DNA from: Camelus ferus
Taxonomy: Eukaryota
Direction: 5' to 3'
DNA length: 64,000 nt
Assembly (NCBI RefSeq): GCF_009834535.1
Contig: NC_045711.1
Location: 20,398,001 to 20,462,000 of the forward strand
Positions within the stretch are counted from its first letter, which is position 1. Each line of letters starts with the position of its first letter. Positions 48,935 through 50,808 of this stretch are shown here, piece after piece. The translations under genes and the position numbers were made by a program. Below the pieces are notes generated by a model. That model was not told where the DNA came from. It made no database searches and was given only the letters and a program-made list of their open reading frames with translations.

Positions 48935-50808
48935 ATGTAGCTGAATTTCAGTGGCCTTCGGGCCCTGGTGACAGGGGCAGGGAAAGGTAGGTGTGAGCCG
49001 GGCAAGTGGGGGTGTGGGAGAGGCCAGACCTGAAGCCTCACAGGCCCACGTTGGGGGTCTGCGTGTCCCTTCATGCCTGTCACAGCCTGTCCTGCCAGCA
49101 CCTGCCCCCCGACTCCACCCACCGAGCCACAGACCGGGGCCTGGGCCGCTCCCCGCCACCCAGCAGGCCCCACTGGGACCAGACATGAGCCCCTCTCTGC
49201 TCAATGCAAGGCCCCTCCAGAAAGGGCAGCCTTCAGACTGGGCAGCCCAGGTCTCTTCCCCCAACCTGGCAGGAAGGAGCTGCCCTCTGGGCCTCCCTTG
49301 GCCGGATCCCAGGTGCTGGGCCTCTGACCCCCACCACCTCCTGGGCCAGCACCCTCTCACTGCTCTTTCTTGAGCAGCAAAGCTGCAGCCCCCAGCCCCA
49401 GACTTGACCCAGACGTGTTGGGCCATCTGCCTGACAGTTGCACCCTTGCAGGGATTGGGCGCGACACTGTGAAGGCCCTGCATGCCTCAGGAGCCAGAGT
49501 GGTGGCCATAAGCCGCACCAACGCCGACCTGTTCAGCCTCTCCAAGGAGGTGAGGTGTGCAGCCCACTGCAGCCCAGGCCCGTGACCCTCAGAACCTGCT
49601 AGAACCATCCCTTTGGTCACTGGCCAATGCCTCCTCTCAGTGCCTCGGGATAGAGCCTGTGTGCGTGGACCTGGGTGACTGGGAGGCCACAGAGCAGATG
49701 CTGGGCGGCGTGGGCCCCGTGGACCTGCTGGTGAAGAACGCTGCCGTGGCGCTGCTGCAGCCCTTCCTGGAGGTCACCAAGGAGGCCTTTGACAGGTGGG
49801 GAGTGGGAGAGGAGGTGGACTGGGGAGAGGGCTGCTGAGGAGGCAGAGCGGGCATGGCCACTGTCTGTCTGTCTGCAATGCCCCTAGGTCCTTCGATGTG
49901 ACCCTGTGCTCTGTGTTCCAGGTGTCCCAGGTGCGCCGGTGGGAGGGTGTGGCTTAGCACTGACGTGGCCCAGGTTGGGGTGCGCTGGGTGGGGTCAGGC
50001 TGCCCCCTCTCTTGGTTTCCAGATGGTGGCCCGAGGCATGATCGCCCGCGGAGTGCCTGGCTCCATCATCAATGTCTCCAGCATGGTGGCCCACGTCACC
50101 TTCCCCAACCTTGCTGTCTACAGTGAGTCCCCCTACCCAGCCTGGACCACCCCCCCGAACCCCACTCCATGCAGGAGCCGCTGGACTCCCGGGCTGGGCC
50201 GCATGCAAAACGGGCTGAATCCCTAAGGGCCCGTGGTGCTGCGCTCCGTCCACGGGCTCCACCAAGGGCGCAATGACCATGCTGACCAAGGCCATGGCCT
50301 TGGAGCTGGGGCCATACAAGGTGCGTGTGGCGGCGCTGGGGGCGCCGGGGGCCCGGACCTGGGGGGGAACGGGTGGTGGGTAAGGCTGGGGGCTGGGGGC
50401 GAGAACTGGGCAGAGGGTGTCAGAGGTAAGTAGGGGCTGTGGGGCGAGGCTCGTCGGCCACCTGAGGCTGCCCCTCCGGCCTCCCCGCCCCAGATCCGGG
50501 TGAACTCCGTGAATCCCACGGTGGTGCTGACGGCCATGGGCCAGCTCTTCTCGGCCGACCCCGATTTTTCCCGGAAGCTGAAGGAGCGCCACCCGCTGAA
50601 GAAGTCTGCAGGTCAGCGGGGCTTCGCGGAGCGGCGGGCGCGTCTGGGGCCAGGCTCATCCAGCGGAGCCGAGCCGCGCTGACCCCGCCCTCCGCCCGCC
50701 GCAGAGGTGGAAGACGTGGTCAACAGCATCCTTTTCCTGCTCAGCGACCGCAGCGCCTCCACCAGCGGCTCGGGCACCCTCGTGGACGCCGGGCACCTGG
50801 CCTCCTAG
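48935..50808 (+). pseudogene. CBR2: Carbonyl reductase [NADPH] 2 (lung tetrameric carbonyl reductase, DCXR paralogue); apparently inactivated
   Basis: Eight exons of the same sizes as DCXR: 48935-48986, 49452-49549, 49641-49795, 49888-49930, 50023-50122, 50256-50320, 50494-50611, 50705-50808 (735 nt). Sequence [30 protein letters not shown]...[12 protein letters not shown]...KLKERHP...VDAGHLAS matches recalled mouse/pig CBR2. TAG at codon 2; exon-6 acceptor is GG; N>T and N>K at conserved Asn residues. Confidence 0.9.

Follow-up and report, generated by a model that had tools for sequence, protein, structure and literature searches.

The carbonyl reductase gene CBR2 was studied in a 64,000 nt stretch of the Camelus ferus genome (assembly GCF_009834535.1, contig NC_045711.1, positions 20,398,001–20,462,000, forward strand). 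This whole stretch is referred to below as the window, and positions are window-based. CBR2 is known from the mouse as a tetrameric NADPH carbonyl reductase of lung and adipocytes. In camels the gene is retained at its ancestral locus, and comparison of the genomes indicates that it was very probably inactivated on the stem of the genus Camelus and that wild and domestic two-humped camels, like the dromedary, now carry it as a unitary pseudogene in neutral decay. Intact and constrained orthologues occupy the same locus, the lesions are common across species and selection is relaxed, as is characteristic of unitary pseudogenes. The same status had been proposed in a preliminary description made from the letters of the window, and it is upheld here.

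The CBR2 orthologue occupies positions 48935–50808 of the plus strand and consists of eight exons, with a coding sequence (CDS) of 735 nt comprising 244 codons and a terminal TAG. Exon boundaries were set by anchoring on conserved exon ends. The gene begins with ATG TAG CTG AAT TTC, the initiator ATG (48935–48937) being followed directly by a stop at codon 2 (48938–48940). The conceptual translation meets only this stop and the terminal TAG, and the other 243 codons are open. The exon number, the open codons beyond the ATG-TAG start, the TATA box and the poly(A) signal had all been reported in the preliminary description and agree with the window sequence. The position of the TATA box is kept in camel, dromedary, alpaca, Moschus (musk deer), warthog and Mesoplodon, and reads TTTAAA in pangolin. 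The description had also implied that the gene carries no other damage, which proved incorrect: the acceptor site preceding exon 6 is GG and not AG.

Comparison loci were fetched around camelid proteins of DCXR, the neighbouring paralogue, and took in the CBR2 region. Four of them belong to Camelus. Locus L009 (GCA_009834535.1) is 100% identical to the window over 13.7 kb, contains the DCXR protein named Camelus ferus and is presumably the window's own genome; L010 (GCA_048773025.1), from a second two-humped camel, is 99.98% identical, and L001 and L002, from two dromedary assemblies, are 99.1–99.2% identical. The alpaca locus L003 shows 95.8% identity. The codon-2 TAG and the exon-6 acceptor GG are identical in all four Camelus loci, the stop thus recurring in the second two-humped camel and in both dromedaries. 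Codon 2 is CAG in alpaca, Moschus, warthog and pangolin, and the exon-6 acceptor is AG in these four and in Mesoplodon. Among 51 intact CBR2 proteins of 244 amino acids (aa), 37 begin with MQ and 7 with MK. Since alpaca and the outgroups carry CAG and most intact CBR2 proteins begin with MQ, the C>T origin of the stop from a CAG codon, suggested earlier, is confirmed. The accompanying suggestion of a camelid-wide loss has to be abandoned, as the TAG is restricted to Camelus and alpaca has both CAG and the AG acceptor. Dromedary carries an additional lesion, a 1-bp deletion in exon 6 (window position 50304), present in both assemblies (L001:6972–7035 and L002:6974–7037), which also share the replacement S135A adjoining the catalytic Ser136.

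A one-base difference seen in a single assembly must always be treated with suspicion, and annotation pipelines commonly take such changes as errors (PMC12127551). For the codon-2 TAG, a sequencing or assembly error or an allele private to the sequenced animal is nevertheless extremely improbable. Three more assemblies, from two or three species, have the identical base; it is accompanied by a second shared lesion and a signature of neutral evolution, and the neighbouring DCXR is clean. As TAG and GG are common to all four Camelus loci, this explanation can be set aside.

After the initiator, the first ATG in frame is codon 70 in exon 3, beyond the TGxxxGxG cofactor motif, as had been noted in the preliminary description. 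The motif, which spans the exon 1–exon 2 junction, is still encoded as TGAGKGIG but is located downstream of the codon-2 TAG, out of reach of the start codon. To assess rescue of exon 6, every AG from intron 5 through exon 6 was enumerated. Most of the alternative acceptors lead to a frameshift, and the two in-frame cryptic AGs, 81 and 78 nt upstream of exon 6, lead to an in-frame TGA. Skipping of the 65-nt exon 6 results in a frameshift and retention of intron 5 in a stop. No frame-keeping alternative for exon 6 was found among cryptic sites, skipping and retention. Hence, with the AG>GG acceptor change, exon 6 and its catalytic Lys153 cannot be joined in frame. Neither the NNAA/NNAG motif, which reads KNAA in camel, nor the catalytic tetrad Asn107–Ser136–Tyr149–Lys153 (roles taken from the paralogue) is preserved: the tetrad has lost Asn107 through N107T, and Lys153 lies in the exon with the dead acceptor. 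For human L-xylulose reductase, PMC3395893 quotes an increase of more than 26-fold in substrate Km and of 95-fold in NADPH Kd for the mutants N107D and N107L (El-Kabbani 2004). From that work and a rat XR study, the same paper quotes a loss of all activity in S136A, Y149F and K153M.

An ungapped comparison of the window with 119 intact proteins (51 CBR2 and 68 DCXR) revealed replacements at highly conserved positions. Five are common to all Camelus: P52L (P in 118 of 119 proteins), N82K, which changes NNAA to KNAA, N107T and F209S (the original residue in 119 of 119 in each case), and Y241H (Y in 50 of the 51 CBR2). R109C and V132I occur in two-humped camels only and S135A in dromedary only, again at positions where all 119 proteins have R, V and S, respectively. 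The direction of each substitution was determined by parsimony, the outgroups being musk deer, warthog, pangolin and a whale; the warthog CDS was used for polarising only, and alpaca exon 8 was aligned with one copy of its duplication removed. The Camelus stem carries 7 replacement (N) and 4 silent (S) changes, the two-humped tip 4 N and 0 S and the dromedary tip 1 N and 0 S, giving 12 N and 4 S for Camelus in total; on the alpaca branch there are 3 N and 6 S. The ratio of the per-site rates, pN/pS, is 1.04 for Camelus and 0.17–0.26 for intact pairs (Moschus and pangolin CDS). The 12:4 split rejects an omega of 0.2 (binomial p = 0.002), fits an omega of 1 and differs from the Moschus–pangolin pair (Fisher p = 0.0023). 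The amino-acid branch length in the tree described below is 0.051 for camel versus 0.009 for alpaca, the DCXR branches of both being equal.

The assignment of the gene to CBR2 and not to DCXR, made in the preliminary description, was confirmed by several comparisons. No stop-free stretch around any exon reaches 140 aa; therefore, exon 3 alone was searched against representative proteins. Exon 3 is conserved in CBR2 and DCXR alike. The full-length exon-3 match P0007 (reindeer) and then the deer CBR2 P0155 served as protein-search queries, the similarity of P0007 (Rangifer) to DCXR-named and CBR2-named proteins being about equal and the search having been redone with P0155. Translated exon 5 matches mouse CBR2 (PDB 1CYD) with an E-value of 1.9e-12 and human DCXR (1PR9) with 9.4e-6; for exon 7 the values are 2.3e-14 and 1.2e-5. 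When spliced and translated with X in place of the stop, the gene shares 82–87% identity with proteins named carbonyl reductase [NADPH] 2, as against about 68% with DCXR. Maximum-likelihood analysis of 36 sequences recovers CBR2 and DCXR as two clades, both with 100/100 support; the window sequence clusters within CBR2, together with the remnants from dromedary and alpaca. The eight coding exons, 244 codons and conserved exon lengths are those of the CBR2 group. The gene order CBR2-DCXR-RAC3-LRRC45, the last two on the opposite strand, is the same in camel, dromedary, alpaca, warthog, pangolin and beaked whale. Identity as DCXR was thus rejected, as exons 5 and 7 are far closer to mouse CBR2 and the window falls in the CBR2 clade. 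A processed, retrocopied pseudogene was likewise rejected because all seven introns are kept and the locus is syntenic.

DCXR itself lies 2.5 kb 3' of CBR2 and serves as an internal control of sequence quality. The window copy differs by 2 aa from dromedary DCXR P0172, and a 244-aa product is annotated there. The sheep and argali hypothetical proteins P0151 and P0152 (Ovis, 423 aa) are CBR2-DCXR read-through fusion models; together with the ambiguous Rangifer P0007, they look like annotation artefacts of the tandem pair.

Several observations weigh against the loss of CBR2 in camels. The database holds a 248-aa Carbonyl reductase [NADPH] 2 [Camelus dromedarius], P0331 (model at L002:6132–7524), and gene callers give a 244-residue product over exactly the CBR2 range in L001, L009 and L010. 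The comparison covers four assemblies of three species, one of which (L009) is the window's own genome. Substitutions are few (16 events), and they were counted by parsimony with four outgroups and not by codon-model likelihood. A second functional copy of CBR2 may exist elsewhere in the camel genome; only DCXR was found in the window, and in two protein searches, with the 120 best hits considered in each, the sole camelid CBR2-named protein was P0331. Finally, the evidence for the loss comes from genome sequences.

The database models are artefacts that either bypass the lesions or 'correct' them. P0331 starts at an ATG inside intron 1. For exon 6 it takes a cryptic acceptor AG 28 nt further upstream, and its reading of this exon is out of frame up to the 1-bp deletion of dromedary, from which point the frame is correct again; the model is therefore devoid of half of the cofactor motif and of Lys153. 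The present results correct such entries, in which camel CBR2 appears as a protein, including the 244-residue models across the stop. The calls made by annotation pipelines, together with the TATA box, the poly(A) signal, 13 of 14 splice dinucleotides and the 243 other codons still open in two-humped camels, would agree with a locus that still yields a working enzyme by readthrough, from the adjacent CUG or from a downstream or alternative start, combined with a non-canonical acceptor. Such a product is very unlikely, however. It would need to get past two independent lesions at once, every alternative outcome for exon 6 is a premature stop or a frameshift, and a start at Met70 removes the NADPH-binding fold. 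Moreover, N82K, N107T, P52L and F209S hit residues conserved in 118–119 of 119 intact proteins, pN/pS is about 1 and dromedary adds a frameshift.

Alpaca CBR2 (L003:5692–7588, one assembly) has lesions of its own, a 1-bp deletion in exon 3 (near L003:6516) and a 26-bp tandem duplication in exon 8 (L003:7524–7549 and 7550–7575). The pN/pS of the alpaca branch is 0.17, like that of intact genes, and its replacements are at variable sites or have precedent. The most economical reading of these sequences is a separate, later inactivation in alpaca, or a private allele. Alternatively, CBR2 could have been dispensable or silent already in the common camelid ancestor, for example through a regulatory change, with the coding lesions as secondary decay. 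The disabled state of the alpaca gene would fit this scenario, as would V45F (V in 48 of 51 CBR2) and A70M (A in 49 of 51 CBR2 and 66 of 68 DCXR), both common to all camelids, and a crude camelid-stem pN/pS of 0.48. This last estimate is unreliable, however, the majority consensus having been used as the ancestor. The reconstructed camelid ancestor has an open reading frame (ORF) and intact splice sites, the alpaca branch shows a 3 N : 6 S split and an amino-acid length 5–6 times shorter than that of camel, and all camelids have kept the TATA region of the promoter. An ancestral camelid loss is consequently considered unlikely, and inactivation on the Camelus stem remains the preferred reading.

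Because all three living species of Camelus carry the lesions, the gene was lost before these species diverged. The preliminary description had read the lack of frameshifts as a sign of recent loss. This view is contradicted by the second shared lesion, four shared replacements at conserved positions, a pN/pS of about 1 and the occurrence of the loss before the Camelus split. The pN/pS of the Camelus stem is 0.60 (11 substitutions), which corresponds to neutral evolution over about half of the stem. Camels and llamas split about 16 million years ago (Mya), and the Camelus crown dates to about 4.4 Mya. With these dates, a half-neutral stem places inactivation near 10 Mya, a rough estimate that depends on the 11 substitutions and on these approximate dates.

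The course of events can be summarised as follows. The CAG>TAG change at codon 2 ends translation after the initiator Met, and the AG>GG change removes the exon-6 acceptor, so that the exon with Lys153 can no longer be kept in frame. Invariant SDR residues, including Asn82 of NNAA and the catalytic Asn107, have been replaced since, and replacement and silent changes build up at equal per-site rates. No active enzyme is expected, any transcript would be a target of nonsense-mediated decay, and the intact DCXR and other reductases would cover the function. Inactivation would have occurred about halfway along the Camelus stem, very roughly 10 Mya. The alpaca lineage would have stayed constrained much longer and then broken CBR2 separately, if the single assembly is right.

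The features of the locus are listed in the table.

Table. Features of the CBR2 pseudogene and its surroundings in the window.
Feature	Position	Strand	Details
TATAAA box	48881..48886	+	about 50 nt 5' of ATG
Exon 1	48935..48986	+	ATG; premature TAG (ancestral CAG); first half of the TGxxxGxG NADPH-binding motif
Exon 2	49452..49549	+	AG/GT splice sites; identical in dromedary
Exon 3	49641..49795	+	P52L codon 49644-49646; N82K codon 49734-49736; Met70 ATG 49698-49700
Exon 4	49888..49930	+	N107T codon 49901-49903 (catalytic-tetrad Asn); R109C codon 49907-49909
Exon 5	50023..50122	+	S136, Y149; V132I codon 50068-50070
Intron-5 acceptor, destroyed	50254..50255	+	GG in place of AG
Exon 6	50256..50320	+	65 nt; carries catalytic K153; normal splicing-in impossible
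Exon 7	50494..50611	+	F209S codon 50605-50607
Exon 8	50705..50808	+	original stop 50806-50808; Y241H codon 50794-50796
AATAAA poly(A) signal	51118..51123	+	310 nt 3' of stop
DCXR (L-xylulose reductase), intact tandem paralogue	53286..55066	+	all exons open

DCXR is succeeded, just as it is in other mammals, by two minus-strand genes, RAC3 (about 56924–59349) and LRRC45 (from about 60082). The roughly 5 kb preceding CBR2 (43450–48420) contain numerous long, GC-rich ORFs on either strand. Ten ORFs from the 5.5 kb before CBR2, scanned with Pfam, gave zero matches. One dromedary annotation has a 678-aa product upstream of CBR2 (L002:1487–3941), which is probably spurious. The window is otherwise GC-rich (0.62–0.70) but includes an AT-rich block (GC 0.34) at 40001–42000, with N runs at 41283–41420 and 41431–41586, and a second AT-rich block at about 16–22 kb; both are probably interspersed repeats.

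CBR2 is also a pseudogene in whales, namely in Mesoplodon (L007:5583–7491) and in Megaptera (humpback; L008:3001–4887). Several lesions are common to the beaked whale and the humpback: exon 1 has lost 1 bp, the intron-1 donor has changed from GT to AT, and both have deletions in exon 4 that overlap. In addition, Mesoplodon has CT as its intron-3 donor. Given the lesions common to both, the gene appears to have been lost in the cetacean stem and to have been dead since. In warthog, exon 1 (L005:10001–10053) contains a 1-bp insertion, and the protein is labelled LOW QUALITY PROTEIN; the insertion may be an assembly error or a private allele, the peccary CBR2 protein being full-length (244 aa). 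No anthropoid CBR2 was present among the best 120 hits obtained with the deer CBR2 query, which included lemur, colugo and tree-shrew proteins. No human Cbr2 orthologue has been found, and Cbr2-/- mice appear fertile (PMC10862846).

These losses could mean that CBR2 has been recurrently and convergently discarded, with independent inactivations on the Camelus stem, within the alpaca lineage, on the cetacean stem and among anthropoids. The overlap between camels and whales might then hint at a shared selective or permissive cause in the handling of lipid aldehydes in lung or adipose tissue, as opposed to pure drift. This idea is put forward tentatively and is more doubtful than not by a wide measure. 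If it is true, CBR2 joins the genes that Old World camels and whales are both reported to have lost.

Guo et al. 2025 (PMC12127551) described Old World camel-specific inactivated genes, among them CES3, CPA3, PLA2G2F, KRT24 and TAS2R16, and several of the genes in that study are also lost in whales. CBR2 is unmentioned in the text of that paper, its tables of 58 and 14 candidate genes lying outside it. The screen left out genes without a human orthologue or modified in alpaca; both filters remove CBR2. A literature search found no paper on CBR2 loss in camels or whales, and it is plausible that the camel loss has been undescribed so far.

With this finding, the few known losses specific to Old World camels are joined by a well-documented metabolic gene, and CBR2 is shown to be dispensable in several large mammals besides humans. 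Caution is needed when CBR2 data from mouse, pig and guinea pig on carbonyl or xenobiotic reduction, lung and fat are extrapolated, e.g., to camel pharmacology. Because DCXR is intact, the physiological effect is probably small. Physiological implications of the loss are speculation in view of the intact DCXR, the reported fertility of Cbr2-/- mice and the repeated losses in other mammals, and a link to desert adaptation is unsupported.

In comparison with known systems, mouse CBR2 (1CYD) and the intact orthologues of deer, musk deer, peccary and pangolin have the same 8 exons, 244 codons, position upstream of DCXR and TATA position as the camel gene. The camel copy differs from them in the codon-2 stop, the dead exon-6 acceptor, KNAA, Thr in place of the catalytic Asn107, P52L, F209S, Y241H and neutral evolution. 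DCXR (1PR9) shares fold, length and exon structure with camel CBR2 at about 68% identity, but it forms a separate 100/100 clade and is intact and conserved in camels. The absence of CBR2 in humans is a loss of the same gene with DCXR retained, as an independent event in another mammalian order. The genes of PMC12127551 resemble CBR2 in having nonsense or frameshift lesions common to all three Camelus and absent at those sites in alpaca. The loss of camel CBR2 is thus a further case of a well-known type of event, in a gene repeatedly lost by mammals.

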